From the NCBI RefSeq assembly GCF_964194025.1, contig NC_134468.1:24118001-24182000 (forward strand): 64,000 nucleotides of DNA. Direction: 5' to 3'. This document shows, in pieces, positions 6,558 through 60,025 of this stretch (its first letter is position 1; each line of letters starts with the position of its first letter). A program made the translations under genes and the position numbers. The stretch comes from Convolutriloba macropyga (lineage: Eukaryota). Under the pieces are notes generated by a model, which was not told the origin of the DNA, ran no database searches, and worked only from the letters and a program-made list of their open reading frames with translations.

Positions 6558-6869
6558 ACCAGGTGCAAATCCTCGAATTCCTTCATCCTCATCACCCTTC
6601 TGAGCCAAGATACTTGCACTCAGTAAACAGTTGTAGTGGACAGATACATCTTCACTGCGAAGGAACTCGCCATACATCACTTCATCGTCCGTGTCCTTCT
6701 CTGCCCTCCCACAAAATATACAGTTGGTTGTGTGAACCAATGCATTTGTCAGAAGCACAGGCGACGCATCAGGAGAGCCACATTCAAAACGCCGCATCAG
6801 TTTGGTCGCTTGAGGCGATGTTTTCTTCTGACCAGAAGTGGACGTAGATGGAGACTGTGCTTTTTCCAT
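6558..6869 (-). CDS. First coding exon of a G2E3/PHF7-like extended PHD-finger protein; further exons not found in the window
   Basis: CIFCGR...YGE...VHYNCLLSAS.L.QKGDEDEGIRGF matches the C2HC pre-PHD of G2E3/PHF7/PHF11. Likely donor GGT|GTATGT at 6557. Acceptor-like ttggttccag at 6934. Confidence 0.8.
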
Positions 6870-7439
6870 TCTTTACTTATTTTTATTTCACATCAAACAG
6901 GCTAATACCACCTTCAAAGATCAAATCTCAAATCTGGAACCAAATAAATTTTGAATAAAACATGTTAACGTATGTTTATGCATGAGCAGGCAGTTAGCAC
7001 ACAAACACACACAACCTATCTTGTTTCAATTTTTATCGTTTTCTGCCGTAGAATGCGATTAAGCTAAACTAAAATCTTTCAACGATTCATGGCAGGATTG
7101 AACATTAAAATTGTACTTCTAACTTTTCGAATTCTGCTTCAAAAATTGTTCTCTAAACGGCAATCTGGCATTGATAAAAAAATACAATGAATCCGATTTG
7201 ATTCAGAGATGACGATTCCATTGTTGAATCATAATCCATAAAAAGGTTTTTAGCCATCAACCTGATAATTTAGATAAAACCAAACCATACGGACAACTAC
7301 AAATCCAGGTCAATCCAACGCACCAAAAACTATTAATTGGCCACATTCAACTCATAATAAATGAAAGCATATAAAAATTTCCAGAACTTTCCAAAAACTT
7401 TCCAGAAATTCATTAAAAAAGGTTACAAGACGCCAAAAT

Positions 7440-8200
7440 AAAAACCACCAGATCTTATATACGATCTTCCAATTTCAGTCACAAGTCCGTTTCACAGATT
7501 TTCGAACATTCAATCCAAGACCAAATGGAAGAAAATTTTGTCCGCAAAGAAAATTTTAAATGAATTTCAGTAGTTTTAGGAAAACCAAATCTACGCGACA
7601 GGCATTATCATATCTTGACAAATTAGTGCGCAATACAATTAATGCATCAAAACATTTTTTTAGCTTGATAGAGCAAACGCTCTCAATTGCAATAAAACAA
7701 GAAAATTTTCAAGACCTAAGAAACAAGGTTTTTCATATAGTTCCATGAAAATTTTGGAAAATTTGTTTTAAAATAGGAAGCAAGTTGAAAAATTAGAAAT
7801 GAGATATCAAATATGAAGCATACCATTTTATAAAACTGAGGTACTACATAGTAGAAAGGAAACAAGCAGATTTTAAAGAATTCCAATTTGCTTATTGTAA
7901 GAACCTAAGTGTCCACATTGACCACAATTTGAATTTTAACACACGAAAGGATATTTTACTCAGCAAAATTGCTTAAAGAATTCGATCTTATCGAATTAGA
8001 AACTCAGTCCCACAAAGCACACGAGTTATGCTCTGAAAATCGCTAGTTCTTTGATATAAGTTACAGTTCTGTTTTGTTTATTCGAACAACAAAATCAAAG
8101 ACTACACAGGCAAATAAAATGGGGAAAAATCTGCTTCATGAGAGAAGTATAATTCAGGCCCAGATTTGCTGCTGAGCAACAAAAAAATTAGCAAGAGAAG
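7440..8200 (+). mobile_element. Decayed LINE ORF2 fragments
   Basis: Remnants resembling YRPISVT (~7460) and CKNLSVHIDHNLNFNT (~7896-7945, cf. KYLGVHID..L.F..H). Confidence 0.5.
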
Positions 8201-8599
8201 AACATTCAACAACACAACTTAAACACAAACTAATATGTGTGACGATGAACAAAAATAAATTCGACTAAAGTGCAACACAAACAACATAAGAAGACTCGAG
8301 ACCTGTTTTGGCCATTTAGATTAGTAAATATCAAGTAAGTGCGAATGGATTTTTTTGAAGAGAGTTATCTCAAACCGTTTTCAAATATTGACCTGAAACC
8401 TGACGCAAAAGGGTAATAAACGAGACTTACATACGCCGTGAAGAACGCAAATTCAATTAAGAAGTAAACAAGGAAGCTCGGTAACGTATGTTCGCCCATT
8501 ATGTTCCGACCCATCTCAGCCAAATGTTTGACATAAAAGTCTCCAAAATGAAGAAAACGTTCAAAAATTTATATATTGCTCGAGATTATAAACTTCTCA

Positions 8600-9040
8600 C
8601 AATCGAAGTTTGTAGCAATTTTATTAGTCCTGTGGTCTTTTGTTTATGCGACTTTCCGCTTGACCGATTTTGAGTCCGACCCATTTGACTTTCCGTCCTC
8701 AAAAACAAGATAAACAGGTAGCGATTCGAGTTCATTAAGTTCTCTTAGAGCCCTAAGCCTCACTATACTCAAGAATGCGATTCACCAGAACTCTTTTGAG
8801 GAAACAAAGTCATGGTGCGAACGGCGGTTATTAATCTTAAAGGGTTGTTTCCCTCCCCCGCCGCCCAACACTCCCATTGTGAAGCTGGGAGGTAGGGTTG
8901 CTGGATGCGATGGGGGTTCAAATCGACAGCAGGTGAAGGGTTTAATCCAATTTGAACCCCCAACTCATCTAACAACCCTACCCCCCATCGCATGAATCCA
9001 ACCACTCCCATAGCATGAAACCAACCATCCCCCCACCACG
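8600..9040 (+). mobile_element. HINE family 1 (G-rich variant) in the opposite orientation
   Basis: cgaagtttgtagcaattttattagtcctgtggtc...ttgaccgattt...cctcaaaaacaagataaacaggtag is the reverse complement of the 46900-47040 sequence. Confidence 0.7.
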
Positions 9041-9071
9041 TGCCTGGTGTTTCCATTTTAAGAAATTGCTT

Positions 9072-12000
9072 CAAACTCAAACCACTAAAAGTTGAAAAAT
9101 GCCTTATTAGAAGGCCGATGACACAAAGGAAACTAAGAGAATCTGGACAACAAAATCAAATAAAAACGACAAGCATTAAATACGACCAACCCAATGTCTA
9201 TCCACTTTTCATGAAAAAAAAACTTAATAAAAAAAGTCAAAGTATCTTCAGATAAAAAATAAACCAACAAACTGACCAACGGATTTTGGCATTAAATATA
9301 TTGAATCTGTTTTTATTAAAGATATGGGATATGATAACGATATGATATGATAATGATAGGATATGAAGTAGACAAAAATCAAAATGCCAACGATAAAAAT
9401 TACGCCTATTCTTTTTGAAAAACAAATAATTTCAAAGTCCAGAAAAAACATTAGCTATCATTGAGACCTGTAAACAATGCAGTTTATCGTGTGACTACAA
9501 AGAGAACAAATACGGCCAAAAATCAAAGATTCAATTTATTTTTTACAAAAGGAAGCACTTAAAATCACAATCTGTCAACAACTTAAATATTTCAACGCAA
9601 AGCAAGTGATATGTGAATTACGTTCAAGGTGATAATTGGATAACAGAGCACAAAATAACTGAAAAACTGGAAAATGTCTAAGAATAAAAAGAGGTTAAGA
9701 AAACTCTAGTATCAAAGCCAAAAAACTTAAAATTAATTGATAGTAACTCAGAAAACACTACATTTTATTTCACTTGCACAGAGGATAATAGCTCTCCTTT
9801 TGCTTACATTTTTTGAACCAAATTTTAAAAAACCATAAGTCATAACAACCAAAACCTGCCTGCTAGGGTTTCAAACAATTTTACACAATGTCAAAACAAA
9901 AAAACGGTAACTTTTTCGTTCAAATTAAAACGTATGTTCTTCGACCCTAAATTGCCACTAAATTTGATTTTTTAATTATTGCGAAGTGATTTGAATCCAT
10001 TCTGATCTAGTAAACAAAAAAATATTTAAAAAAGGACAGCGCCCCATTAAAATCCGAATAACATTTTAATTTTACATCTCTACAATTATACCAAAACTAG
10101 TCGTGCTATTGCTGCTAATCCCCTGAAACAAAAAACTGCTCAAAATGTTACCAAAACAGCTAAGATGAGAAAAATAATTGCTTTATATAAAATCAAGTGA
10201 GAACAATTATATAGTTAAATTAGCGGAAAACCATTAGGTATCCACTGAAATTATTCAATAATTTGTTTAATAGCTTGACAGATAGCAATTGAGACCATTA
10301 AAAAATCTGATTCAGTCAAAACGGTACAAAAAAATGCTGGCAAAACAAGCACCTGTTGACAAATTACTAAGAATTTGTCGGAGCAAAAAAACCATGAGCT
10401 TGAATCAGAAAACACAATATTTGTTCGTTGAGCTTCATAAATGGGACCTCTCATTGATTGAACCTCCATATAGAAACGGACTTCTCTGTAAATGCGCTGA
10501 AAAAAATGCAGAAAAAAAAGATAAAAAGAGGAAGCCAAAAAACAAAAAGAATCCCTTTTCATTACAAAAATCAACGATGGAACATAAAGTGGCCTTGCTG
10601 TCACTGCGCAGCAGTTAACAAACCTCAGAGTTCCCAGTAAATCCGTAATAGTTTTTGGGAAAGGAAAATCTGAATAACTTAAAAAAAAATGTTGCATTGT
10701 TGATTTCAAATTTGGCCGCATATTAAAGAGTTCCAGAACACTTTTGTTAGGAACCGGAGTTAAAACCAGCCCTCAACTGGGTAAACAGAGATTAGTTTAG
10801 TAATTCTTTATCTACATTACCGGTCAATTCGGACAAAGTGGGATAAAAAACAGTAGTGCCAGTTTTCATAAAAAATGAAAACCCAAAGTGTTAAAGCTTT
10901 AGCCAACAACTTGGCCAAAAGGGTTGGTTCAAACAAAGTAGCAGCTCTCTATTATCACGAAATTGAAACAAATGCGACTATTGCTAACCAGTTTCATCAT
11001 ATTTGTAACCAAATTGATCAAAATTTTACCACAAATAACGAAAAATGTGAACAAAACAACGTAAGTTAGCCTAACGTTCAAAAAACGTTATAACCTCCGT
11101 ATCTACTCGAAAAAAACGAATTAAAAAAACTTTAATTTGATATTCTTACCATGACAAGCTTTCTAAGGATACCACGTACATTTCACTCAGATGAATATAT
11201 CGATCAGCGGAAATTGTCTTAACAGAAAAGAAAACCCAATTGAGTATATAGTTCCTCTCCCCACTGAAGTGGGTAGGAACAATGAGAATGAAGTCAAATG
11301 GTCGCGAAAGAATACTAGATGCAAACGACGAATAGAAAACCGAAGTTATGAAAAACAATACAAACAATTGCAAAAATTCAGAAAACTGACTATCATGACA
11401 ATCACCGCTTTCTCTAGCTCGACCAGCAAACTGTTGTTTGCATAAAAGAGGAAGTTATTGATAAATGTTAAAATTTTCTACAATTAAAATCTACTGATTA
11501 GTTATTGCGCAACAACACTGCAAAACAACAAACCACTGATCGGCTCAATGAGCTAACAAGAAACCACAAAAATCAAAAAGCAAACAACAGTGCTATACGA
11601 AAATTATTTTTTCAACGATACAGAAGGCAATAGAAGCAGAGATCATACTATGAAGAGAAAGAAACTGAAATTGGAAGGTTGCAAATATCACCGTTGGTGA
11701 TAACTTTTTGGAGTTATTTTCTTTAAAATCAAAAACAAATGAATGCAAACTAAAGATCTTGCTCGCTCACTAGCAGCCTAAATGTCAGTGTCAAAAATAA
11801 CAGATAGTAAACGCAAAAATAAAAATAAAATATATTACTATAACAATATCGGTTAATTAACACTTGAAAACAACAGTAAGACAGTTTGGAACACATTTGA
11901 AAACTTCTATGTGAAATATCAGCATATCACGTTTCAGGTGAAAAATATCAACATTTAACTTAAACCGAATATGGACTTTCAAGAAACATTTCAGAAAAAA

Positions 12001-15000
12001 GTTCAAAAGGTTGAAACAAAAATTGACAAATAGGTTGATTTTCAGAATTCACATTTTGATCAGGTCATTACTCTTAGGTTTCACAAAACAATTATCATTA
12101 CACATAGCGGCATTAAAAAATATGCAAATACGAAAGCGAATTGTTGCCAGATTACCTAGTGATAAATTAAAACAAAGAATTCAGACGTGCAGTAAAAAGA
12201 TTTAGCTAAGAGAGAAAAGAATACAGTTTCTCTTTCAACATTCATAATTTTTGAAAAATTATACAAAAATTCTAACTGATTATGAATCTAATCGCTGCGC
12301 TATTAAACAACCAAGATACCAAAATAAATCCATCGGAGAGATTATAGCAATGTGGACAAACGTGCTTCAAAACGGCAAGGTTCTAAGGGACACTTAATAC
12401 TCTCATCAAAAAAATCCTAAGTCCATTTTCCGAGTTTTTGCAAAGATAAATCAGAGGTGTTTTTCATAGTGATAAACATGCCATCGGGGTTCCACATCAA
12501 CTTCTTGCTCTGTTTTTTGCTTCTACAATGTAATAGAAAGGTTTAAAAAGTGCAAAAGATCAAGAGTTGATTTCATTCAAGCAGTTGACTGCACATATAA
12601 GAACTAAAAACCTGCTAACAACTACACTTTGATAACAAAAAATAGAAAGATCAAAAACACAACTCCTTCTTTTATTTGTTGCATCTCAGGTCGATTGCAC
12701 GGCGAGTTCTACGCGAGTTGCTTATAAATTTACCTGCATTTTATAATCATTTTAATCAATTTACACGCAATCTAATTTACTAGTGTGTTAATTTGAAGAT
12801 AAAAATGACCTAGAATACTAAACATAGAACAACCCCGTTTTAAGTTCAAGGACTGAGTTCAAGTACTGATCAAAAACCAAGCTACAAAAAAATAGCCAAG
12901 ATGCTTTTCTCGGGGTGAAAAATAATAAGGTTGACAGGAACGACTTTAGGTTGAGCATTGATTGGATACAATGCTGCATAAAAATGTTTACTCAGATTCT
13001 TCAAATGAAAAAGATATTATGTCAAGATCTCAAAAAAAACAATTTCAAATAATTGTAGTATAAACTCAAACGACTAAAAGTTTAATAAAGCCTTATTAGA
13101 AGGCCGATGACACAAAGGAAACTAAGAGAATCTGGAAAACAAAATCAAGTAAAAACGACAAGCATTAAATACGACCAACCCAATGTATCCATTTTTCATG
13201 AAAAAAAAACTTAATAAAAAAGTCAAAGTATCTTCAGATAAAAAAAACCAACAAATTGACCAACGGATTTTGGCATTAAAGATATTGAATCTGTTTTTAT
13301 TAAAGATATGGGATATGATAACGATATGATATGATAATGATAGGATTTGAGGTAGACAAAAATCAAAATGCCAACGATGAAAATTACGCCTTTTCTATTC
13401 TAAAAGCAATTAATTTCAAAGTCCGGAAAAACACTAGCTATCGTTGAGAGCTGTAAACAAGCAGATTATCGTCTGACTACAAATAGAACAAATACGGCCA
13501 AAAATCAAAGATTAAATTTATTTTTTTTAAAAAAGGAAGCATTTAAAATCACAATCTGTCAACAATTTAAATATTTCAACGCAAAGCACGTGATATGTGA
13601 ATTACGTTCAAGTTGATAATTGGACAACAGAGCAACAAATAACTGAAAACTGGGAAATGTCTAACAATAAAAATAGGTTAAGAAAACTCTAGTATCAAAG
13701 CCAAAAAACTTAAAATTAATTGATAGTAACTCAGAAAACACTACATTTTATTTCACTTGAACAGAGGATAATAGCTCTCCTTTTGCTTACACTTCGCTAA
13801 AAAGTGACAGAAATCAGATTAAAAAAGGCAAATCTAAAAACCATCATTTTTTGAATCAAATTTTTAAAAACCATAAGTCATAACAACCAAAATCTGCCTG
13901 CTAAGGCTTCAAACAATTTTACGCAATGTCAAAACAAAAAAACGGTAACTTTTTCGTTCAAATTAAAACGTATGTTCTTCGACCCTAAATTGCCACTGAA
14001 TTTGATTTTTTAATTATTGAGAAAAGATTTGAATCCATTCTGATCTAGTTAACAAAAAATATTTAAAAAAGGACAGCGCCCCATTAAAATCCGAATAACA
14101 TTTTAATTTTAAAACTCTGCAATTATACCAAAACTAGTCGTGCTATTGCTGCTCATCCCCTGAAACAAAAAACTGCTCAAAATGTTACCAAAACAGCTAA
14201 TATGAGAAAAATAATTCCGTTATATAAAAAAATTAAGTGAGAACAATTATATAGTTATATTAGCGGAAAACCATTAGGTATCAACTGAAATCATTCAATA
14301 ATTTGTTTAATAGCTTGACAGATAGCAATTGAGACCTTTAATAAATCTGATTCAGTCAAAACGCTACAAAAAAATGCTGGCAGAACAAGCACCTGTTGAC
14401 AATTTACTAAGAAATTGTCGGAGCACTAAAAACCATGAGCTTGAATCAGAATACACAATATTTGTTCGTTGTGCTTCATAAATGGGACCTCTCATTGATT
14501 GAACCTCCATACAGCAACTGACTTCTCTGTAAATGCGATGAAAAAATTGCAGAAAAAAGATAAAAAAAAGGAAGCCAAAAAACAAAAAGAATCCCTTTTC
14601 ATTACAAAAATCAACAATGGAACATAAAGTGGCCTTGCTGTCACTGCGCAGCAGTTAACAAACCTCAGAGTTCCCAGTAAATGCGTAATAGAGTTTTTGG
14701 GAAAGGAAAATCTGAATATAATAAAAATAAATGTTGCATTGTTGATTTCAAATTTGGCCGCATATTTAAGAGTTCCAGAACACTTTTGTTAGGAAACGGA
14801 ATTAAAACCAGCCCTCAACTGGGTAAACAGAGATTAGGTTAGTAATTGTTTGTCCAAATTATCGGTCAATTCGGACAAAGTGGGCTAAAAAACAGTAGTG
14901 CCAGTTTTCATAAAAGATGAAAACCCAAATTGTTAAATCTTTAGCCAACAATTTGGCCAAAAGGGTTGGTTCAAACAAAGTAGCAACTCTCTATTATCAC

Positions 15001-18000
15001 GAAATTGAAACCAATGCGACTATTGATAACCAGTTTTATCATATTTGTAACGATATTGATCAAAATTTTACCACAAATAACGAAAAATGAACAAAACAAC
15101 GGAAGTTAGCCTAACGTTCACAAAACGTCAAAACCTCCGTATCTACTCGAAAAAAAATGAATTAAAAAAACTTTAATTTGATATTCTTCCCATGACAAGC
15201 TTTCTAATGATACCACGTACACTCACTCAGATGAATATATCTATGGGCGGAAATTGTCTGAACAGAAAAGAAAACCCAATTGAGTATATAGTTCCTCTCC
15301 CCACTGAAGTGGGTAGGGACAATGAAAATGAAGTCAAATCGTCGCGAAAGAATAATAGATGCAAACCAGGAATAGAAAACCGAAGTTATGAAAAACAATA
15401 CAAACAATTGCAAAAATTCAGAAAACTGACTATGATGACAATCACCGCTTTCTCTAGCTCGACCAGCAAACTGTTGTTTGCATAAAAGAGGAAGTTATTT
15501 ATAAATGTTAAAATTTTCTACAATCAAAATCTACTGATTAGTTATTGCGCAACAACACTGCAAAACAACAAACCACTGATCGGCTCAATGAGCTGACAAG
15601 AAACCACAAAAATCAAAAAGCAAACAACAGTGCTATACGAAAAATATTTTTTCACTATGAATAGAAAGAAACTGAAATTGGAAGGTTGCAAATATCACCG
15701 TTGGTGATAACTTTTTGGAGTTATTTTCTTCAAAATCAAAAACAAATGAATGCAAACTAAAGATCTTGCTCGCTCACTAGCAGCCTAAATGTCAGTGTCA
15801 AAAATGACAGATAGCAAACGCAAAAATAAAATGAATAGGCGAAATTTTAATTCTTAAAAAGCTTAAAATTCAGGGAAAAAATTAGACGACAAAAACAATG
15901 CAACCCGAATGAGACAGTCAGCAGCCAGAAAAAGATAACCAAAGGGATGCTGAAAAATAACAAACAAGACATAAATGAGCTGGTGCTTCAGTTCGAGCAG
16001 GAAAAAATCAAAATATGCAATTTCAGTTACTATAACAATATCTGTTAATTAACACTTGAAAACAACAGTAAGACAGTTTGGAGCACATTTGAAAACTTCC
16101 ATGTGAAATATCAGCATATCAGGTTTCACGTAAAAATATCAACATTTAACTTAAACCGAATATGGACTTTCAAGAAACATTTCAGAAAAAAGTTCAAAAG
16201 GTTGAAACAAAAATTGACAAATAGGTTGATTTTCAGAATTCACATTTTGATCAGGTCATTACTCTTAGGTTTCACAAAACAATTATCATTACACATAGCG
16301 TCATATTTTGCCGCTATGTATTTTGCTTCTACAAGGTAATAGAAAGGTTTAAAAAGTGCAAAAGATCAAGAGTTGATTTCATTCAAGCAGTTGACTGCAC
16401 ATAGAAGAACTAAAAACCTGCTAACAACTAAACTTTGATAACAAAAAATAGAAAGATCAAAAACACAACTCCTTCTTTTATTTGTGTCATCTGCAGGTCG
16501 ATTGCACGGCGAGTTCTACGCGAGTTGCTTTTAAATTTACCTGCATTTTATAATCATTTTTATCAATTTACACGCAATCTAATTTATTAGTGTGTTAATT
16601 TGAAGATAAAAATGACCTAGAATACTAAACATAGAACAACCCCGTTTTAAGTTCAAGGACTGAGTTCAAGTACTGATCAAAAACCAAACTACAAAAAAAT
16701 AGCCAACATGCTTTTCTCGGGGTGAAAAATAATAAGGTTGACAGGAACGCCTTTAGGTTGAGCATTGATTGGATACAATGCTGCATAAAAATGTTTACTC
16801 AGATTCTTCAAATGAAAAAGATATTATGTCAAGATCTCAAAAAAAACAATTTCAAATAATTGTAATAAAAAAGGCAACTCCAAAAATTGATTGGTACTTT
16901 TTAACTGACACGAATCGCCAAAGTAAATCTGAATATAATTTTGCTGCTTTATCCACCCATTCATTCCATTGAGCGAATTCTAATGATAATTTTAGGCACT
17001 CCGTTCAAATTATGGAAAAGGAAAATCGACCAAGCAAAATTAGATAGAACAAAAAACAACAATTTTGTTCAAATATAGCTGGAGGATTGCCAGAAAATGA
17101 CCGCTATAGCTTCGTAGATCTGGAATATTAAAATGATAGTAAGAAAAACACCGAAAAAACTTCGTTCGACTGAAAACTGAGATGTTATATTTTGATTGAG
17201 AATCTGTAATTTATTGCTGCATTATATTCAATTGACCGTATTTCCTTGAACTAAAGTAAAAAAAAATGTGAGAGTGGGAAGGTCATTTTTGAGATTAAGT
17301 CACGTGTGACCAAAAACTTAATCAGGCGAATGAACAAAAGAATCACTCCACAAAGAGTGAAAAATGACTTCATGCACGCAATTCAGTTGAAATTGCATGA
17401 ACAAAAAGCAAATTTAAGTGAATGTGACACCATACGGTCGAAAAAAAAATCTTGAAGACAAAAAAAACTTCAGATTTTCTAATAACTAATATACACTGAC
17501 AGATTTCTTAATTATTGAGAAAAGATTTGAATCCATCTAGTTAAAAAATATTTAAAAAAGGACAGCGCCCCATTAAAATCTGAAAAACATTTTAATTTTA
17601 AAACTCTGCAATTATACCAAAACTAGTCGTGCTATTGCTGCTCATCACCTGAAACAAAAAACTGCTCAAAATGTTACCAAAACAGCTAATATGAGAAAAA
17701 TAATTCCGTTATATAAAAAAATGAAGTGAGAACAATTATATAGTTATATTAGCGGAAAACCATTAGGTATCAACTGAAATCATTCAATAATTTGTTTAAT
17801 AGCTTGACAGATAGCAATTGAGACCTTTAATAAATCTGATTCAGTCAAAACGCTACAAAAAGAAAAAAATGATGGCAAAACAAGCACCTGTTGACAATTT
17901 ACTAAGAAATTGTCGGAGCACTAAAAACCATGAGCTTGAATCAGAATACACAATATTTGTTCGTTGTGCTTCATAAATGGGACCTCTCACTGATTGAACC

Positions 18001-21000
18001 TCCATATAGCAACTGACTTCTCTGTAAAGGCGATGAAAAAAATGCAGAAAAAAGATAAAAAAAGAAGCCAAAAAACAAAAAGAATCCCTTTTCATTACAA
18101 AAATCAACGATGGAACATAAAGTGGCCTTGCTGTCACTGCGTAGCAGTTAACAAACCTCAGAGTTCCCAGTAAATGGGTAGTAGAGTTTTTGGGAAAGGA
18201 AAATCTGAATATATTAAAAATAAATGTTGCATTGTTGATTTCAAATTTGGCCGCATATTTAAGAGTTCCAGAACACTTTTATTAGGAACCGGAATTAAAA
18301 CCAGCCCTCAACTGGGTGAACAGAGATTAGGTTAGTAATTCTTTGTCCAAATTACCGGTCAATTCGGACAAAGTGGGCTAAAAAACAGTAGTGCCAGTTT
18401 TCATAAAAGATGAAAACCCAAATTGTTAAATCTTTAGCCAACAATTTGGCCAAAAGGGTTGGTTCAAACAAAGTAGCAACTCTCTATTATCACGAAATTG
18501 AAACCAATGCGACTATTGATAACCAGTTTAATCATATTTGTAACGATATTGATCAAAATTTTACCACAAATAACGAAAAATGTTAACAAAACAACGGAAG
18601 TTAGCCTAACGTTTACAAAACGTTAAAACCTCCGTATCTACTCGAAAAAAAATGAATTAAAAAAACTTTAATTTGATATTCTTCCCATGACAAGCTTTCT
18701 AATGATACCACGTACACCTCACTTAGATGAATATATCTATCGGCGGAAATTGTCTGAACAGAAAAGAAAACCCAATTGAGTATATAGTTCCTCTCCCCAC
18801 TGAAGTGGTTAGGGACAATGAAAATGAAGTCAAATGGTCGCGAAAGAATAATAGATGCAAACCAGGAATAGAAAACCGAAGTTATGAAAAACAATACAAA
18901 CAATTGCAAAAATTCAGAAAACTGACTATGATGACAATCACCGCTTTCTCTAGCTCGACCAGCAAACTGTTGTTTGCATAAAAGAGGAAGTTATTTATAA
19001 ATGTTAAAATTTTCTACAATCAAAATCTACTGATTAGTTATTGCGCAACAACACTGCAAAACAACAAACCACTGATCGGCTCAATGAGCTAACAAGAAAC
19101 CACAAAAATGAAAAAGCAAACAACAGTGCTATACGAAAATTATTTTTTCACTATGAATAGAAAGAAACTGAAATTGGAAGGTTGCAAATATCACCGTTGT
19201 TGATAACTTTTTGGAGTTATTTTCTTCAAAATCAAAAACAAATGAATGCAAACTAAAGATCTTGCTCGCTCACTAGCAGCCTAAATGTCAGTGTCAAAAA
19301 TGACTGATAGCAAACGCAAAAACAAAATGAATAGGCGAAATTTAATTCTTAAAAAGCTTAAATTTCAGGGAAAAAATTAGACGACAAAAACAATGCAACC
19401 CGAATGAGACGATCAGCAGCCAGAAAAAGATAACCAAAGGGATGCTGAAAAATAACAAACAAGACATAAATGAGCTGGTGCTTCAGTTGGAGCAAGAAAA
19501 AATCAAAATATGCAATTTCAGTTACTATAACAATATCTGTTAATTAACACTTGAAAACAACAGTAAGACAGTTTGGAGCACATTTGAAAACTTCCATGTG
19601 AAATATCAGCACATCACGTTTCACGTAAAAAATATCAACATTTAACTTAAACCGAATATGGACTTTCAAGAAACATTCTCAGAAAAAAGTTCAAAAGGTT
19701 GAAACAAAAATTGACAAATAGGTTGATTTTCAGAATTCACATTTTGATCAAGTCATTACTCTTAGGTTTCACAAAACAATTATCATTACATATAGCGGCA
19801 TTAAAAATATGCAAGCACAACAGCGAATTGTTGCCAGATTACCTAGTGATAAATTAAAACAAAGAATTCAGACGTGCAGTAAAAAGATTTAGCTAAGAAA
19901 GAAAAGAAAAAAGTTTCTTTCAACATTCAAAATTTTTGAAAAATTATACAAAAATTCTAACTGATTATGAATTTAATCGCTGAGCTATTAAAACTTCGTT
20001 CGACTGAAAACTGAGATGTTATATTTTGATTGAGAATCTGTAATTTATTGCTGCATTTTATTCACTTGACCGTATTTCCTTGAACTAAAGTAAAAAAATT
20101 CAATGTGAGAGTGGGAAGGTCATTTTTGAGATTAAGTCACGTGTGACCAAAAACTTAATCAGGCGAATGAACAAAAGAATCACTCCACAAAGAGTGAAAA
20201 AATGAATTCATGCACGCAATTCAGTTGAAATTGCATGAACAAAAAGCAAATTTAAGTGAATGTGACACCATACGGTCGAAAAAAAAATCTTGAAGACAAA
20301 AAAAACTTCAGATTTTCTAATAACTAATATACACTGACAGATTTCTTAATTATTGAGAAAAGATTTGAATCCATCTAGTTAAAAAATATTTAAAAAAGGA
20401 CAGCGCCCCATTAAAATCTGAAAAACATTTTAATTTTAAAACTCTGCAATTATACCAAAACTAGTCGTGCTATTGCTGCTCATCACCTGAAACAAAAAAC
20501 TGCTCAAAATGTTACCAAAACAGCTAATATGAGAAAAATAATTCCGTTATATAAAAAAATGAAGTGAGAACAATTATATAGTTATATTAGCGGAAAACCA
20601 TTAGGTATCAACTGAAATCATTCAATAATTTGTTTAATAGCTTGACAGATAGCAATTGAGACCTTTAATAAATCTGATTCAGTCAAAACGCTACAAAAAG
20701 AAAAAAATGATGGCAAAACAAGCACCTGTTGACAATTTACTAAGAAATTGTCGGAGCACTAAAAACCATGAGCTTGAATCAGAATACACAATATTTGTTC
20801 GTTGTGCTTCATAAATGGGACCTCTCACTGATTGAACCTCCATATAGCAACTGACTTCTCTGTAAAGGCGATGAAAAAAATGCAGAAAAAAGATAAAAAA
20901 AGAAGCCAAAAAACAAAAAGAATCCCTTTTCATTACAAAAATCAACGATGGAACATAAAGTGGCCTTGCTGTCACTGCGTAGCAGTTAACAAACCTCAGA

Positions 21001-24000: not shown

Positions 24001-24222
24001 AAGGTCATTTGAGATTAAGTCACGTGTGACCAAAAACTTAATCAGGCGAATGAACAAAAGAATCACTTCTCAAAGAGTGAAAAATGACTTCATGCACGCA
24101 ATTCAGTTGAAATTGCATGAACAAAAAGCAAATTTAAGTGAATGTGACACCATACGGTCGAAAAAAAATCTTGAAGACGAAAAAAACTTCAGATTTTCTA
24201 ATAACTAATATACACTGACAGA
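9072..24222. repeat. Four-copy multi-kb tandem segmental duplication with copy-specific deletions; content is mostly decayed TE sequence
   Basis: The same marker sits at 11191, 15231, 18728 and 21564 (spacings ~4.0, 3.5, 2.8 kb). Spurious ORFs recur, and 17853-18137 and 20691-20975 translate identically. Confidence 0.95.
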
Positions 24223-24842
24223 AGGCACCAAAGCAGAGAAAGAAACCTGAAGAATTAAAGAAAATCAAAAGAAAGAACCTAAAAAAACATAATTTTATTA
24301 CTTTCATTAAATTAGGATTCAAAGACACCAAGTTTCTCGTTTTCAAAAACACCAAAATACAAAAACTCTACATTTTTGAATAATTAATAAACACCGACAG
24401 AAGGCAACAAAGCAGAGGAAAATCCTCAAGATTAAAAATTAATCTATAAAATCAAAATCTTAATTTCATTAATTTAGAAAAAAATACACCAAGTTTTTTG
24501 CTTTATTAACACTCAATTCAAAGAAAAATCAAAACCAAGTCCCCAAGAATAGTTGCAGCAAGTATTATTCAGGTAAAATTTTAAACAGAATTCTAGCAAA
24601 ATCTCAAGGCTGCGTTACATTATATGAAATGAATGACAAAGCAAAAAATAAAAAAAGTTTCAGGAAACGGCTAAAATCATGATGGTAAAAAACACTTACA
24701 GAAAATAATTTTCCCTGAATTTCAAAGACTTAAGTATTACAAAGACTATAGTAATTAATACCAAAATACAAACAAAAAACTGCGAAAAATTGGTCAAAAC
24801 AACCAAAACGGGATTAGCATGAGTACAATGTCATAACATAAA

Positions 24843-27521: not shown

Positions 27522-27530
27522 TGAAGTGTA

Positions 27531-27605
27531 CTAATTAGTAGGCATATAATTTACGATGACATTGTTCTATAAAATTAGTAACAGATAGACTGAAGAGAAA
27601 CCCAC
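27531..27605 (-). other. Probable short 5' UTR intron of the photolyase
   Basis: Donor AAG|GTGGGT at 27605, TACTAAT branch-like motifs, and acceptor ctactaattag 9 nt before the ATG. An alternative acceptor ttttatag lies near 27567. Confidence 0.5.
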
Positions 27606-36987: not shown

Positions 36988-37175
36988 CTATGCAGGTCAC
37001 CAACCCCGTTATTTGATCATCACGTCTACCAGTGAAATCAGTTCACCTTCTAGATGAACATTTCATTTTTGATCAAGACAACTCGCTCATTCTCAAACCT
37101 CAGATCAACTTACATATAACTTACATATGGTGATATAACAAAAGTCATATAAGTTACAGCTTTTGTGATACTAAC

Positions 37176-48490: not shown

Positions 48491-49239
48491 AAGAAATCGG
48501 ACCACTCGTCTGTTGCTGCAGTGCCCGAAGTTGATGGGTTAGCTGAGCTCATACTAGGAGACGGAATGGGTTTAGGAGCCGTCACAGAAGACGGAGGGGC
48601 GGCAATCACGGGCTGAACAGGGTTCTGGGGCGCATTGTTCCCTCTATTCCTGCTACTGGGACCAGGAGGTGGGGGTAACAAACCAATTGGCCCACCGCCA
48701 GCGGAGGCCCCTTGCGGCCTCCTCGGTCGACTGGTACTTCCGTCGCCACTTTTACCTCCAATATTTATTTTGATAGTCTCTCCAGCTTTGAAACTAAGGT
48801 CAAGTTTAGGTGCGTTAGCTTCAGCTGCAGCTGCATCGTTGTCATCTGGTGTTTTCAGTTTCTTAAAATGATCTTGAAGAGAAACATTAAGATCAAAAGA
48901 ATCGCCTCTGTCCGCAAATCCGATTCCTATAAAAGCCTTGTCTCCTCTCTCGCTCACTAATCGTACGACAAAGTAGCGGCTAGAATCTGACACCGGTTCA
49001 ATAGCTGGCCCGGGATACTGTTCAATTGGACACTGGGCAAAAAGTTGACACGAATTTCGGTCTTCGAGTTTGAGAAAAAGTTTATCAGATTTGGATATCA
49101 GCCGCATACGACCTGTCCACTCAGGCTCTTCTAATTTCCAATCTGCAGCTCTATAGTTTCGGTTGCTGGTCCTTGGGGGGATTCTATATACAAACACTTC
49201 ATTCTTCACAAGCAGGATACTTTCATACGCGGCATCCAT
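48491..49239 (-). CDS. NECAP: Adaptin ear-binding coat-associated protein (NECAP), coding exon 1 of 2
   Basis: PHear domain ([19 protein letters not shown]...YRAADW...DSSRYFVVR...[25 protein letters not shown]), [23 protein letters not shown] and a WSDF motif. The apparent ORF stop overlaps a donor, TTC TT|GTAAGC. The exon is 749 nt (phase 2). Confidence 0.95.
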
Positions 49240-49799
49240 TATAATCTGAAAGAAAAAGGGATATTTTTAAGTGGTCAAGCTGTCATTTACTCAGAATTCT
49301 CGCAGTTGACTGAGTAGGGAATTTTTAGATCAGTCTTTTAAATTTTTCGTGTACCATTTCTTGAACAGAAAAAAACAACACTGCAGTCAACCTAAGTTTG
49401 TTCTGAGAAACCTAAGCTGAGTTCGAATTGCATGATGACTACCAGGGAAAAACATGGCACTCTTTTTTTAAATGATATTGCCGTTCTATAGGAGTACAAA
49501 ATATGGAAAATGTGTGCATAATAATTTGGCTAATTTAATTAAGACAATTTCTTGACATCGAGGACTTCAACATTCTGTGAAGTTAAGCTGTCAGCTTGCA
49601 CAAAAGTTGGACGGCCCCGCATAATCCATTAAACTTTCTCTAGAATTTGATACTTCTCATCGAAAGTTGAAAATTTCAAACGTGAATGCATCGTGCTCAA
49701 AGTTAAAACTCATAGTAATACACAAATTACACTCTTAGCAAAGAAGAAACTGCTTTTAACGTACGATATTCAGGATAACTTACCTATTGAAAAAGAAAT

Positions 49800-50172
49800 C
49801 AGGATTTTGAGTGGAGTATGGAGGGGGGTAGGGTTGTGACATCGCTGGACGAGAAGGGAGTTCAATTCGTCAGATTGGAGCAGGATGGACGGGGGGTGAC
49901 TGAGGGCATCAAACTGTTAAGAATAAGAATCGCCCACTCACACCCTGAAATTCTCTCCTCAGAACAGTTTCGAAGAATCGCATACTTAGGCTAAAAGGCG
50001 TAAGGCTCTAAGAGAGCTGCCCAGCCACTTAATGCCCCCGAGCGCTTCCTGTTTATACCACTTTTGAGGAAGAAAAGTCAAATGGGTCACATAAAAAATC
50101 GGTCAATCGAACAATCGCATCAAAAGTCCACAGTACTAAAATAAGTGCTAGCAACTTTGTTTGAAAGCAATT
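49800..50172 (-). mobile_element. HINE family 1 G-rich variant fragment
   Basis: Shares taaggctctaagag...ctgtttat...ttttgagga...aatcggtcaa...aactttgtttgaaagcaatt with 46647-47047. Confidence 0.65.
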
Positions 50173-53100
50173 AAAAAGTGTACTCATGCAATTTCGCCAG
50201 TTCTTTAAATATCTCTTCCTTGATTTAGAGTTGCTCACCTTATCCTTCTCGAAAGAAAACTGTTACTTTCTCCTTCAAAAAAATTGAACAGAACAGTTTG
50301 GCTCAACGGTTTTCCAAAAATGGTAGCTCGCCAAGTCGTTCCATTTTGTTTATAAGGATAGGTAGTCTAAGGAAATAGGACTATTTTCAATGCCTCATTG
50401 ACTAGTATGAGCCTTAAATAAAAATTTCTTTTCAACTCTAGCTGGTAGACTTATCACTTCCTGCATGAAAAAAATTCTATTAATTAGACCCAAGACAGGC
50501 TGATTTTTAAAATTAAGTTTGATACCTAAAACAAAGTTACAACTGTTTTAAATGTTTTAAAACAATTGTGCCGTGTTCAGTAATTGGAACGAAAATTCAA
50601 ACATGGCAAAGTCTTAGAAGCCTTTAGTTGCATCACTTGTATTTGCGTTCTAGCGGTTTAAATTGAGCCACCCAAATGGTCCGCTTCCCAGAATAAAATC
50701 TGACATAGAAAATAATTTTAGCATGCTGTTATTTTGAAGCCAACTCTGAAAATCCAAAAATCTTGCCTAAAGGCTTCCAAAAACGATTTCTGAGAAGTTA
50801 ACTAGGTACTTGCTCAATTTTAACATTTAGATTTGAGGTGCTTTTGAGGTGCGAAAGGGTGCCTACCCAAATGTGAATAACAGACAATACGGGAACAATT
50901 ACTTCAAGCAAACACTTTCAACTTACTGCTCTTCATGAGCTTTTTATTGTTCCGACCAACTTTATGCTCAACTGTTTTTTTTTTGCTCAGTAAATTTTCG
51001 CCGATAGATATATTCATCGTAGAGAGTTGTGATTCACATCATTAGTAAAGTAAGCTTGTCAAGAGTAGAATATCAAATTTAAAAGTTTTCGAATTTTGTT
51101 TTTTTCTGTGGAGTTACGGCGGTTTAAGGTTTTGTGAACTTCAGTCCCATTTCGTGTTGCACTGTTCAAATTTTCGGTATTTTTGCAGAAAATTCGATCA
51201 ATTTTTCTAAAATATGAAAAATTGTTAACATTAGTTCAATTGTTTTATGTTAAATTGACCTGTAATGCACACGTAAAAACTGCGGACTCAATTTTTATTT
51301 ACTGAGAGGAGGGCTATTTTTTACCTCTTGTTCCTAAAAAAGTTTTCTGGAACTAACATTTCGGCGCCCTTTTGATAAACTAAATCGACATTTATAAAAT
51401 ACAAACCATTTATTTTTGATGAAGGTTTTTGTTTGCCAAAACAACTGTTACATCACTATTTCCGACAATTAATTTTTTCAACAGCCGCTCAGTGATAGCG
51501 AGTCCAGTTTTGTTGTCAAGGTTGATTTTTTATAATAAGGGTTCAGATTGTACTTTTGTATTTTGGCATTATTGAAATGATTATCCCCATTTTTATCTCC
51601 ATTGCCAACAAGTCTATTTTCACGTAAAATTCAGTTAATGAGAGATTCCATTTATGATCAAAAGAGGCGTATTGAATAAATAGATTATTTTTTCTCAGGA
51701 AAATATATGTTTTATTGTTGAAAAATTTTTAATTTTCAGATCAGTCTTTTAAATTTTTAGTGCAACATCGCAGTCAACCTAAGTTTGTTCTGAGAAACCT
51801 CAGCTGTTTTCGAATTGCATGATGACTACCAGAACAAAACATGTTTTCGTTTCTTGAACTTTAAAAAGGCCTTGTTCGGTATCACAGCAGCTATTATTGA
51901 AACTTAAAAACACTTTCAGTTGTTATCTCAAAAGCTCATCGCTGATATAACTATAGTCATCAGAAATTGATAATTTCATATGGATATTGATTTTGCTAAC
52001 ATTTCAAAAAATTAGTTATTTTAATAAACGAGCAGCAAAAACAGGGCTAGCTTTGATCTAATTATGGAATTTTACAATCCAACGACTTGACGGATTATAA
52101 TGGCCACTCTCCTTGTTTAAGAAAATTGCCTTTCTTGGGTTTTTTGTTAATTACAGACCAGAATGATTTCAAAGCTTATGGAATTTTTGTTTGCTAAAAA
52201 TGGTTTGTGAAATTTTGAGCTTTACCTGCATTAATTATTGTTTTGCAGTCTTTGAACTAAGTCGCACTAATTACAGGTCCAACTGACTTCTTAAGTAGTT
52301 ACAATTTGAACCATTTACTACTTTTTGAACGTTTATGGTTATAACTTTTGAAAAAAATTAATGGTTTTGAGCTCTGCCACATTTTATCTTATTTCTGTAA
52401 CCTTGACGCTCAGTCTCAGCAAACAGAGAGAGATCACACCCTCTTTCGATTGAATTAGAATTTCGTCTATTTTCTGTTTCATCAATCAAATACTGATTTT
52501 TGGGCTTCGATACAAGTTTTCATAACTGTTTGATATTTGAACAATTTCCATTTTTGAAGTTTTTACTGCTGTCTTGGCACATATGACTCGCTAACCAGAA
52601 GTCACATATCACATTAATGACATTGAAAGAAGGCGCAATTGATTTTATCTAATTTTTAAATAGAACACGATTTTAACAGCTCCGACAGCCTTCTCTCTCA
52701 AAATTTAATTTAAAATTTGATTTTTGCCTGTATCTCTTCCTTTTGTAGTTGCATAACATTCTGGATGAGTAAAAGTATCAACGGCTGCCTAAGAGGCATA
52801 AACAAAGCTTTTGTCATTTAAGCTTTTTTAAATTTGCCCTTTTGGTTTTTTTTAACTATTTGATAATTATCTCAATAAAGACGGTTCCCAAATGTTTTCT
52901 AATTAAATGCAAGCCAATTTGTTAAGTTTTACCTGATGCTATCTTGAATTTGTTTTATGATTTTTTAAAAGAAACAGATAGTGATTTTTCGTCATAATTA
53001 ATACTTGTTGATTTAATGATTTTTTGTTTGTCTTGTCGTTTATTTTTGTTAATGGCAGGTATCAATTGCCCTCTAAAGATGCATTATTTAATTTGTTTAG

Positions 53101-54143
53101 TTGTATGAGCATAAAGTGATTTTTAGATCGATACGCCAACTATTCTTTTAAGAACTTTCCAATCTATTGCTCATTTGGTAGACTATAAAATCAAAAATGT
53201 GGTTGAGCGGAGTCGGAACATTATGTGCAAATGCACATTACCAAGCCTCCTTGTTGTTGCCTTTTATTATGGGCAAAATTGGGGCTTTTAAATAAGTAAA
53301 ATCTATAAAGACCACTTCTAGGATAACAAAAACAACAGCATGAAGGTATTTACAGCAAACTTCGTTTGAGACCTACTCGAAAACCAAATAATGCAGTCTT
53401 CCCAGCTGAAACTTTCCAAAAGTAGGATTGAGCGAAAAGGTGACCGAACTTACTTAAATTATCTCTTTGAAACAGGAATCTAAGCATCTTCAGACGTTTC
53501 GACGAACCATACATTACAAACTAGTTTAAGCCCAAGCAGACTGCAGTTTAGGCCCGCTCTCCCACCAAAAGTCAAATCAATGAGACCAAAAAATGAAACA
53601 AGCGGTACTATAGATCGTAGAAAAAGAAAAACCATCTTAAATACATGTCGCTTAACTAATATTGACCAATAAGTTATCCTGTTACAATCCCAGTTTTTAG
53701 TTCAAGAGTCAGTTTATCAGATAGGGTTTTAAATTAGGCATTTATGACAAAAACTATTACAACAATCAAACCTGAAAACGTCTTCAACAACAAATTGCTT
53801 TTGGAAATGTGATCTAACTAAATTCCACAGCTCTTGCAGCTCCAACTGAGTTGAAAAACAGAGATCGACGTCATTCGTTATCAGTTGAAGTGCTTAGGAA
53901 CTGACAGCACTTATTTCAAATCAACTTAGCGATAATATTATATTACATTTCTTAACTTTAAATACACGAAAAACGACATTTCAAATGCAAATGAGTGCCA
54001 ACACAAGAAAACTTAGCAATTTGTGCTCCTCAGTAACTATCGATATCATACATAACGCGGACAACAGACAGGAAATCACGTCGTAATCAATTTTTATCAA
54101 ATCAAATATTAAACTGATGGAAAAGTTGTCATTCAATTTCATG

Positions 54144-54415
54144 CTAAGTGTCTCCATTTCCATTTGATACTGAGTCATGATCATCGACATTCTCGTAGAC
54201 CTGTTCCTCGCCTTCCTCGTCCCCTTTAGCAGCAGCATTTTTATCAGGCACCCATAGTCCACTGTCCACACATTTCTTCAGCCACATTTCGGCTTCCGCA
54301 GGCTCGTATTTCGCAAATGTGTCTTTCAGCATTTGGATATCTTTGGTGTCAAAGCATTGCTTCAAATCAGCTGGTAGTTCTTCATACACTTCCACTGGAT
54401 CTAGACCTCCTGGTC
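54144..54415 (-). CDS. CDC37: Cdc37 coding exon 2 of 2 (joined protein ~381 aa)
   Basis: Acceptor gtcatttcag|GACCAGGAGGT. Joining restores the conserved ERQKRLGPGGLDPVEVYEELP, followed by LKKCVDSGLWVP. The exon is 272 nt and phase-compatible with exon 1. Confidence 0.95.
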
Positions 54416-57428: not shown

Positions 57429-57590
57429 AAAACACGCTTTTACAATAATTGCTTGAAACTTCATTCAAGAGCAAGTAATAACATTTTTCCCATAGCCAAC
57501 TCCTACCTAGCTATGACTTACTATTTCCTGATGCTTCTCAAACCAATTTAGATTTTAACCTGATTCTCATACCTATACACCAAAACATAA

Positions 57591-59033
57591 ACCGACCAAC
57601 ATCTGGCGATCTGGGCTCTCGAGCGATTGGCGAAGAAATCAATTTAGAAGGGGGCATAGCCAGAGAAACACTTATGATGAAAAAAATGACTAGCGAGGGC
57701 TTCGAAGACGCGAACTCCCTGATGAGAGTCCTTGACTGTAACAACTCTGCTATACGAGCTATGAACGTTTTTCTTTCACAATCAATTTTATTTTAGCAAC
57801 ATACTTAATTTGTGAAAGCTCACAGTTGAAATCACTCGGACAAAATCAATAATTAAGCGTGAAAGAATCATTGAGATTTAACATTAAAAGAATGTTCAAG
57901 AAGAGAACAGCCCACCAAAAAAATCCAAAAAGACACACGTTTCCCACAACTTTTTTTAAAACTCTGAATTAGGAGAAAATCCCTCCCCATATAGGGTAGT
58001 TGGTCAACTCGGATCGGTAAGTCAACTCATTTATACATGCAAACATTCTGGCAGTAGTCAAACGTCAAAACATTAAAAATATAGCTTAAGTAGGAATGAG
58101 AAAGGCCGCAATAGCTTCGTAGATCTGCAGTTTCAAACCAATAAATTTTTTAAATGCTGAGATGTTATATTTTGATAAAGAATCTTTTATAAAACTTATT
58201 GCTGCTTCTACTAACTGCCCTCAAATAACCTTTAATTAGAGCGACACACACATTCACTACACCTTATTCCTTTGAATACAAGTGAAGAAAAGTCAAATTA
58301 AGAGTTAGCAAACCATATTTGAGAGCGGGGTAAGTCACGTGTGACCAAAAACTTAATCACGCGAATGAGACAAAAAATTCGCACCAATAATAGTGAAAAA
58401 TGACGTCAAGCATGCAATTAAGTTTAAATTGCATGAAGTTATTGTGACTCCATGTGGTCGTAACAAAAATCTTGACGAAGAAATAAAAAAAACAAGCGAT
58501 TGCCAATAACCTCCGCTATCGCTTTGCGGCTATTAACGACAACCGCCCCATTTAATATGAATCCAATGGAAGCTTCAAAAATGAGAGATCAGTGCATTGA
58601 TCGCGCTCGCGCGCTACAGAGGCCAAGTATTGAGATACGCAAAAGCGCGGAGCTAAATGTTGTCCCGATGTATGTAATCACGTCAGTATATGAATCCTCT
58701 TTTTCTCGCTAATTCTTTCAGCCAACATCTGTATGGCTTTCGACGCTGACGGAAACACTATCAAAGTGGAGGTTCAAAAATAATGCTTGCACAGAAATAG
58801 CGGGTTTCTTTTCAGATTAAAAACCGCCCTTCAGAGAATAAATTGTCTCCTCAAAACCGTCTCGGAGAATAATATACTTGGAGACATGTTAATGCCCTAC
58901 GTGCTTTACCTGTTTATCTTGTTTTTGAGGACTGAAAGTCAAAAAGGTCAGACTAAAAATCGGTCAGGCAAAAAATTGCATTAAAAACAAACCACAGGAC
59001 TAATATAATTGCTACAAACTTTGTTTGAGAAAT
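57591..59033 (-). mobile_element. Cluster of HINE family 1 (57591-~57950, ~58790-59033) and family 2 (~58100-58535) copies in the CDC37 intron
   Basis: Same terminal and internal motifs as the other copies; tRNA-like segment at ~57690-57760. Confidence 0.65.
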
Positions 59034-59151
59034 TAAACTTCAAACGTGCAGTAAAAACCAGATTTAGCAGCAACGGAACAACTGCAAAAGTCAACAAAAA
59101 CTTGAAATTTAGCTTTACTTGCCATAGTCTACAATTGTTAAGTCAACTTGC

Positions 59152-60025
59152 CTAATCTTTTCTGCCTCTCCTCTTCTTCCGCTTCTTTCATGGCTTCCTC
59201 CAACCTTTCCTCGGCTCTTTTCCTGATTCTTCCACGAAATGCGTTCACTTCGTCATTGAATACTTCCATGTATTCAGGGTTGGCTTTGGCCTGCCTGTCG
59301 TAAAATGGACGAACAGCTGCTCTAGGATCTAATTTCAGCTCTTTCCCTAGTGTCAAAATGTATTGCATTGAAATGACTTGATTTGAAACCTGTTCCATTA
59401 GAGCAAATTTCTCCTCTAAAGCTAGATCAATACACCACAATGTTAAATAGTTAGCAGTTTCCTCGCAAACAAGGTCTGGATTTTTGGTTAAAAAGGCCAA
59501 GCTATCCGCTGGTTTTTTCATCATTCCAAATTCCTTAATGTTTGCACCACTCTTTTTATTGAAATCAATTTGTCTTTGCGCTTTTTCATCTTCACTCATA
59601 TCTTTAGTTCTGTCTTCGTGGTCTAGAGTAGCTTTGTTGACGCGAGAAGAGGTAAAACCAGGCTTTGACAATGTATCAACATTCATAGGTTGCTTCCGTT
59701 TCTCAGTATCTAACTCTTCTTTTCGTTTATCCAGGTCTCTTTTCTTTTCTTTCAAGGAATTCATCTTAGCTTCCAATTGTACAATTTTATCATCATCGTT
59801 AGCCTTTTTAGCTTCATTTAAATCTTGCTCCACTTTTCTGTAGTCACATTCCCACTCTTTCCACTCGAACTGGAAGCTCTGCTCACTCTGCTGCATCTTT
59901 TCCATTCTCTCAACGCGAGCCTGGTGTCGCCATCGGAATAAACTGGGAGTATCAATGTTTGGGTGAGTGTCATCTTCGTCATCTGAGACTTCAATGTGGT
60001 CCCACTTGTGATAATCGATTGGCAT
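59152..60025 (-). CDS. CDC37: Hsp90 co-chaperone Cdc37, coding exon 1 of 2
   Basis: The N-terminus MPIDYHKWDHIEVSDDEDDTHPNIDTPSLFRWRHQARVERM is the diagnostic Cdc37 start, including the SDDED CK2 site; LVCEETANYL is also present. The exon is 874 nt (phase 1) and ends ...AGA TTA G|GCAAGT. Confidence 0.96.

Follow-up and report, generated by a model that had tools for sequence, protein, structure and literature searches.

The 64,000-nucleotide (nt) stretch of the Convolutriloba macropyga genome described here (hereafter the window; NC_134468.1, 24,118,001-24,182,000, C1) carries five genes, each with an AG upstream of its start codon that could serve as a splice acceptor. Coordinates are relative to the window throughout. 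In minus-strand order the genes encode CDC37, NECAP, pirin, a (6-4) photolyase and a PHD-type protein. Pfam searches of the open reading frames (ORFs) of the window identified CDC37_N/CDC37_M, DUF1681 (NECAP), Pirin/Pirin_C and DNA_photolyase/FAD_binding_7, in ORFs at 59138-60025 (CDC37) and 48487-49239 (NECAP/DUF1681), in three exon ORFs (pirin) and at 25953-27521 (photolyase). The PHD-type gene was recognised through its orthology to a zf-HC5HC2H gene of the acoel Symsagittifera roscoffensis (L031:19408 onward). Both the Pfam matches and the S. roscoffensis orthology bear out the claim of an earlier note on this DNA that five unrelated genes lie here in one orientation, and with all five on the minus strand the cluster has the common orientation expected of an operon resolved by spliced leader (SL) trans-splicing.

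The gene models were refined by tblastx against the S. roscoffensis loci and with complementary DNAs (cDNAs) of relatives, and are collected with the other features in Table 1. The C-terminus of NECAP in this model, ...FEDPLLQF, agrees with a relative's cDNA (L032). The closest named homologue of the photolyase is the S. roscoffensis 'cryptochrome-2-like' protein, with 67% identity. As this protein matches only the photolyase locus in the C. macropyga genome it is the orthologue, and the two form a clade with support of 100/99 in a tree of the 60 best hits.

Table 1. Features of the five-gene cluster in the order in which they are met on the minus strand (positions relative to the window; species D is a third acoel lineage)
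Feature	Position	Strand	Description
CDC37 acceptor region	60037..60081	-	15-nt unit aatgatctttttcag three times in tandem, with an acceptor at the end of each
CDC37 coding exon 1	59152..60025	-	ATG at 60025; Pfam CDC37_N, CDC37_M; 82% amino acid identity to S. roscoffensis
CDC37 intron	59151-54416	-	GC-AG, begins GCAAGT, 4.7 kb; junction supported by JGI cDNA L038
CDC37 last coding exon (CDC37_C)	54144..54415	-	stop 54146-54144; tblastx to S. roscoffensis and species D
CDC37-to-NECAP spacer	49240..54143	-	4.9 kb, interspersed repeats; partly duplicated in the alternate haplotype
NECAP acceptor ccctttttctttcag	49246..49247	-	AG 6 nt before ATG; probable SL acceptor
NECAP coding exon 1 (PHear/DUF1681)	48491..49239	-	ATG at 49239; donor GTAAGC at 48490; Pfam, relative's cDNA
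NECAP last coding exon	38149..38248	-	stop 38151-38149; follows a 10.2-kb intron; tblastx to S. roscoffensis
NECAP-to-pirin spacer	37381..38148	-	768 nt; AATAAA at 37908-37903 and 37557-37552
Pirin acceptor ttctctctttcccaatgtcag	37401..37402	-	AG 20 nt before ATG; candidate SL acceptor; in both haplotypes
Pirin gene	27968..37380	-	exons ~37380-37176, 36987-36597, 28269-27968; stop 27970-27968; Pfam, tblastx to S. roscoffensis
Pirin-to-photolyase spacer	27522..27967	-	446 nt; AATAAA at 27723-27718
Photolyase candidate AGs	27591-27590 (-68), 27568-27567 (-45), 27532-27531 (-9)	-	in the pirin-to-photolyase spacer
(6-4) photolyase/cryptochrome-type gene	25953..27521	-	one exon of 522 amino acids, ATG at 27521; Pfam
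Photolyase-to-PHD spacer	6870..25952	-	19 kb, full of ~2.8-kb repeated units (ORF periodicity, haplotype comparison)
PHD-gene acceptor tttatttggttccag	6934..6935	-	AG 64 nt before ATG; candidate SL or cis acceptor
PHD-type (zf-HC5HC2H) first coding exon	6560..6869	-	gene runs past the left end of the window; donor read

Upstream of the start codons, unpaired AG acceptors are found at -11 (CDC37), -6 (NECAP), -20 (pirin), -9 (photolyase, with further AGs at -45 and -68) and -64 (PHD gene) relative to the ATG. The exons that would begin after them, at 60036, 49245, 37400, 27530 and 6933, are at exactly the positions given in the earlier note. Scored with a rule that was picked after the data were seen (YAG preceded by at least seven pyrimidines in ten), acceptor sites occur on the minus strand at 0.0081 per nt. 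A site of this kind lies no more than 20 nt from the ATG in four of the five genes, where 15% would be expected for each gene, and acceptor motifs near the ATGs are thus commoner than chance (binomial P ~0.002, with the rule set post hoc). That the motifs are nevertheless accidental, merely pyrimidine-rich AGs in AT-rich DNA that play no role in splicing, is very improbable. The motif is common (0.8% of positions), the photolyase -9 and PHD sites are weak and the strong photolyase -68 site is missing from one haplotype; set against this are the excess just described, the conservation of the CDC37 and NECAP acceptor positions in three genomes and cDNAs of orthologues that are spliced at these sites.

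The positional conservation concerns the first two genes, where acceptors lie 1-11 nt before the ATGs in all three of the acoel genomes compared. For CDC37 the last AG, at 60038-60037 and 11 nt before the ATG, is the probable SL acceptor; in the orthologues the acceptor is 9 nt before the ATG. The 15-nt unit aatgatctttttcag that surrounds it is present in two copies in the alternate haplotype versus three here, and an upstream copy of the acceptor, if used, would bring in an out-of-frame upstream ATG. For NECAP the distance from acceptor to ATG is 4 nt in S. roscoffensis and 1 nt in species D. The PHD gene of S. roscoffensis has its AG at -62.

The photolyase is less straightforward, with three candidates to choose from. 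The -9 site (aattag) is weak and the -68 site is strong. In the alternate haplotype an 8-bp deletion removes the -68 site, while the -45 and -9 sites are retained together with a tiny upstream open reading frame (uORF; ATG TCA TCG TAA) that begins 4 nt past the -45 site (27522-27568) and has TGA as its stop codon in that haplotype. In S. roscoffensis a strong AG is found at -47 and ATG GTA TAA comes 9 nt after it (L031:9954-10000), and the uORF may be a conserved regulatory one. Because the -68 site is deleted in one haplotype, the uORF follows the -45 site and S. roscoffensis offers a parallel at -47, the -45 acceptor would seem to be at least as likely as the -9 site that the earlier note put forward.

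For such acceptors to be used in trans-splicing the genome must encode a leader. S. roscoffensis is reported to use the leader GCCTAATTGTTGTGATAAACTTATTAAATAGA in trans-splicing 30.2% of its genes (PMC9911081), and this sequence is found 2,612 times in the C. macropyga genome at up to three mismatches. In 1,264 copies it is followed directly by GT (...AAATAG/GT), and most of these are in arrays at C9:23.1-23.75 Mb. Their donor is GTAAGT and lies within stem-loop I, and they contain a U-rich Sm-like stretch and a second hairpin; in the predicted fold of the 117-nt unit the 3' half of the leader pairs with the intron (z = -4.3). The leader exon, GT donor, Sm-like site and stem-loops that mark an SL RNA gene are therefore all present. 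Within the arrays the genes are spaced at 1.06-2 kb and are found in both orientations. The C. macropyga leader is the same as the published S. roscoffensis SL over 31 nt, the published 32-mer having an extra A past the donor site; its 3' end is ...CUUAUUAAAUAG, and the SL tail is written as ...CTTATTAAATAG. The true leader is then 31 nt long and ends in ...AAAUAG.

More than 1,000 further copies of the SL are dispersed through the genome and have mRNA-like sequence directly after them, in which an ATG is usually found 2-11 nt on; in 12 of 15 dispersed SL-bearing copies an ATG lies no more than 11 nt downstream. Examples are at C1:6265183-6265214, C1:19470236 and C1:27789419. These look like retrocopies of trans-spliced mRNAs. 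One recurrent dispersed family begins SL-AG-ATGAGCCAGCGAGGCATG and is also found in another assembly among the JGI matches listed (L094); its recurrence both here and there suggests a mobile element with a transcript that was SL-trans-spliced before retroposition. A search of the genome for retrocopies of NECAP or CDC37 returned none, only the gene's own locus in each case. The idea that the intronless photolyase is itself a retrogene with a decayed SL before its ATG was set aside, as a search of the window for a 22-mer of the SL, allowing up to three mismatches, gave no match.

Transcripts of related acoels show the leader joined to two of the five genes. In a cDNA contig (L032; Logan ERR550532) that is 79% identical to NECAP, the first 22 nt are SL sequence and run into ttaaacATG, with the joint 6 nt before the ATG; a cDNA from a JGI metatranscriptome (L038), 77% identical to CDC37, likewise begins with SL sequence, 14 nt that are joined to acaacaATG, again 6 nt before the ATG. 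A third cDNA (SRR6713266) has 3 possible SL bases only. When JGI contigs were scanned with a 19-mer of the SL there were at least 120 matches, 80 of which were analysed; the SL was at the 5' end in 68 of the 80. Among the matches listed, 54 environmental acoel SL-mRNAs have a long first ORF, and in these the median distance from SL to ATG is 8 nt, with 39 of the 54 at 20 nt or less, so that the layout observed in the window is the normal signature of an SL acceptor in the clade. None of the 80 contigs is from the five genes and none is dicistronic. Also among the matches listed, the same SL is on many marine metatranscriptome transcripts (Ga0073937, Ga0073981, Ga0073986, Ga0073941) and two metagenome contigs (Ga0126343) carry the SL RNA genes of another acoel, SL/GTAAGTATTCC.... 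As the SL heads environmental transcripts and SL RNA genes are found in metagenome contigs, the leader is conserved across several acoel lineages in environmental data.

These transcripts bear directly on the possibility that the acceptors are ordinary cis-splice sites, in which case every gene would be transcribed from its own promoter and begin with a short non-coding exon, with the acceptors closing introns in the 5' untranslated region (UTR), for instance from the donors at 27605 and 53453. The orthologous CDC37 and NECAP mRNAs bear the SL at exactly such sites, and distances of 6-20 nt between acceptor and ATG fit the SL signature of the clade. In S. roscoffensis, moreover, the 280 nt between CDC37 and NECAP would be a tight fit for a promoter, 5' exon and intron in addition to a 3' UTR. 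Some observations would nonetheless suit cis-splicing: SL trans-splicing does not affect about 70% of S. roscoffensis genes (PMC9911081), the PHD acceptor is 64 nt from its ATG and thus beyond most SL sites, and the donor AG/GTGGGT at 27605 could pair with the photolyase -9 AG to give an intron of 73 nt. This donor could pair only with the -45 or -9 AG (introns of ~37 or 73 nt); pairing with the -68 AG was rejected, since the 13 nt between them are too short for an intron. Overall we regard cis-splicing as a quite improbable account of the five acceptors, and trans-splicing at these predicted sites is well supported by homology.

Whether the genes also share a transcript is a separate matter, for which the cluster was compared with that of other acoels. 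In S. roscoffensis CDC37, NECAP, pirin, photolyase and the PHD gene are in the same order and orientation, separated by spacers of 280 nt (CDC37 stop at L034:9747 to NECAP ATG at 10028), 6.2 kb, 353 nt and 7.8 kb respectively. In the third lineage, species D, NECAP is 2.4 kb after CDC37 in the same order. Linkage and orientation are therefore conserved, for all five genes in S. roscoffensis and for CDC37-NECAP in the third lineage, and the sequence comparison identifies the five genes as a conserved acoel microsynteny block. Coding DNA is only ~70-74% identical among the three lineages, and alignment of the C. macropyga spacers with those of S. roscoffensis gave no alignment and no conserved block, from which it follows that the linkage has outlasted considerable divergence and the turnover of transposons. 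No counterpart of the 8 kb upstream of S. roscoffensis CDC37 is present within 24 kb in C. macropyga. Short spacers sit at partly different junctions in the two species. The pirin-to-photolyase spacer is short in both (446 and 353 nt), and for each of the first three junctions there is one species at least in which it is short, as would fit a cluster that was tight ancestrally. The conserved order and orientation would be compatible with an ancestral operon but are no proof of one.

The spacers within C. macropyga are of two kinds. The earlier note had described them as tiny, giving ~450 bp from the pirin stop to the photolyase ATG and ~770 bp from the NECAP stop to the pirin ATG. Both lengths are correct (446 and 768 nt), and at these two of the four junctions the description holds; it does not hold for CDC37-NECAP (4.9 kb) or photolyase-PHD (19 kb). 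Close spacing of the kind found in operons is thus seen at pirin-photolyase, arguably at NECAP-pirin, and is not seen at the 4.9- and 19-kb junctions. The CDC37-to-NECAP spacer gave 9,503 repeat candidates at first look and contains a ~300-bp element with dozens of copies. Some 2 kb immediately after the CDC37 stop (52268-54147) are present twice in the alternate haplotype (L166:15541-20095) as copies that are ~89% identical, and consequently the length of this spacer varies within the species. Length also varies within the last pirin intron (8.3 kb), where ORF periodicity indicates about five tandem units of ~1,067 bp at 30055-34900; the alternate haplotype has fewer of these units and its intron is ~2.3 kb shorter.

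In the NECAP-to-pirin spacer the first ~330 nt after the stop (37840-38148) are identical between the haplotypes and the remainder has ~5% single-nucleotide polymorphisms and an indel of ~80 nt. The identical stretch is probably a constrained NECAP 3' UTR that ends after the AATAAA at 37908-37903, which this difference between the two parts makes the better candidate for the NECAP poly(A) signal. The second AATAAA (37557-37552) is ~150 nt before the pirin AG. The earlier note had held the spacers to lack the HINE/LINE repeats of the introns; this spacer does contain a ~50-bp repeat of very high copy number at 37673-37724, where word depth in DNA runs is ~30,000 against ~36 in the flanks. The element represents a piece of some highly abundant repeat and adjoins a T-run/G-run homopolymer. 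Over 36400-38600 the four DNA-type runs give even contigs with no joints or SL loose ends, and are uninformative on expression. In the pirin-to-photolyase spacer the AATAAA precedes the three candidate photolyase AGs by 125-185 nt. The predicted poly(A) sites would be near 37880 for NECAP and near 27700 for pirin.

Taken together, we consider it likely that the AGs near the start codons are SL trans-splice acceptors and that the cluster comprises at least three transcription units, and not one tight polycistron. Addition of the SL at the CDC37 and NECAP sites would be very likely, at the pirin site fairly probable, and at the photolyase and the PHD-gene sites the odds would be even in each case. 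The SL RNAs encoded in the arrays on C9, a different chromosome, would donate the 31-nt leader, which would be joined at the AG acceptor in place of the RNA upstream of it, leaving mRNAs whose 5' UTRs would measure between a few nt and a few tens of nt. The transcription units would be CDC37, NECAP with or without the genes that follow it, and the PHD gene, set apart by the 4.9-kb and 19-kb repeat-laden spacers, the lengths of which vary between haplotypes. Of the adjacent genes, pirin and photolyase form the likeliest co-transcribed pair, at slightly under an even chance. This pair is favoured by the shortness of its spacer in both C. macropyga (446 nt) and S. roscoffensis (353 nt), with an AATAAA ~125-185 nt before the candidate acceptors. 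Co-transcription of NECAP with pirin is doubtful. Of the trans-spliced operon proposed in the earlier note, the trans-splicing is upheld by the SL RNA genes and by the SL-bearing mRNAs of orthologues, whereas the operon is not, given the 4.9- and 19-kb spacers with their repeats and their polymorphic lengths.

Several points weigh against this interpretation. The SL evidence for CDC37 and NECAP stems from orthologues and not from the C. macropyga locus itself, and searches for relatives' cDNAs of pirin, photolyase or the PHD gene found none. A search for pirin transcripts gave a 939-bp metagenome scaffold as the only close relative among the representatives, and scanning JGI contigs for the SL with an ATG and a pirin motif gave no match. 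For the photolyase, an exact-protein look-up returned genomic contigs only, and among the 60 best hits in its tree the acoel clade consists of the other C. macropyga haplotype and S. roscoffensis only. Pirin of S. roscoffensis has no equivalent strong acceptor within 60 nt of its ATG. Finally, long spacers do not strictly bar read-through in a genome that has 10-kb introns; as such introns are tolerated and spacing is all that separates the units, the division into at least three is one that we infer. A directional poly(A) RNA-seq data set of C. macropyga exists (ERR13669978; PMC13650328).

At the other extreme all five genes would form one polycistron under a single promoter upstream of CDC37, which SL trans-splicing would resolve and which would have persisted despite the transposon-swollen introns and spacers. 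The genes are co-oriented and unrelated in function with an acceptor before each ATG, their whole order is kept in S. roscoffensis, no other gene-like ORF is found within 14 kb upstream of CDC37, and the shortness of the first three junctions in one species or another would fit an ancestrally tight operon that was swollen by insertions. However, the 4.9-kb and 19-kb spacers contain repeats and many AATAAA/ATTAAA signals, the ~2-kb duplication after the CDC37 stop means that spacer length differs between haplotypes, and neither species has a short photolyase-to-PHD distance (7.8 and 19 kb). Known intercistronic distances in systems with a single SL are below ~100 nt, and even in Trichuris the median is 517 nt (PMC7986045). 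A single type of SL, furthermore, cannot separate operonic from monocistronic genes, and the general level of synteny between the two species is uncalibrated. We therefore hold a five-gene polycistron to be improbable. The same low probability is given to the proposal that CDC37-NECAP-pirin-photolyase, perhaps with the PHD gene, is an operon of ancestral convolutid origin and continues to yield a single precursor transcript across kilobase-scale, repeat-laden spacers of polymorphic length. If true, it would be the first Xenacoelomorpha operon on record, with resolution by the SL that is independent of tight spacing.

On our preferred reading, that of SL acceptors in at least three transcription units, the practical consequence is that annotation of the C. 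macropyga genome needs SL-aware gene boundaries, and for several genes the acceptors would locate the 5' end of the mRNA with a precision of a few bases. A published study has already described SL trans-splicing in acoels (PMC9911081), and no report of operons in acoels or Xenacoelomorpha was found in the literature. Operons would be a trait that acoels share with nematodes, tunicates, flatworms and chaetognaths if pairs of the pirin-photolyase type are co-transcribed. As acoels are regarded either as the sister group of all remaining Bilateria or as members of the deuterostomes, acoel operons would have a bearing on the number of times that operons and trans-splicing evolved in animals.

The nearest known system is that of S. 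roscoffensis (Martinez et al, 2022; PMC9911081), which shares with C. macropyga the 31-nt leader, SL RNA genes with a GT donor and the order of the five genes. It is, however, a different species, with protein identities of 67-88%, and the paper describes no operons. The SL2 operons of Caenorhabditis elegans likewise join unrelated co-oriented genes and have a poly(A) signal ~100-150 nt before the acceptor, as is seen here at pirin-photolyase and possibly at NECAP-pirin; here, on the other hand, there is a single SL sequence with no SL2-type leader seen, and two of the junctions are 4.9 and 19 kb long. A parallel in this respect is provided by tunicates (Ciona, Oikopleura) and Schistosoma, in which one SL serves monocistronic and operonic genes alike (PMC7986045), so that operons can be defined only by spacing and RNA evidence. 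Their intercistronic distances are 0-100 nt (PMC7986045), whereas the shortest distance from stop to ATG here is 446 nt and from poly(A) signal to acceptor ~125 nt. Trichuris muris, whose intercistronic distances have a median of ~517 nt and whose intergenic distances are large (PMC7986045), comes near to the two short spacers here, but it is a nematode with SL2-type leaders and operons supported by RNA-seq. Lastly, in monocistronic SL genes with an outron, such as those receiving SL1 in C. elegans, an unpaired acceptor likewise precedes the ATG and the SL replaces an outron transcribed from the gene's own promoter. In an organism with a single SL, trans-splicing gives no means of distinguishing genes of this kind, transcribed separately, from those of an operon. 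The outron model is the null for each of the five genes, although it does not predict the conserved head-to-tail linkage of unrelated genes that is observed here.

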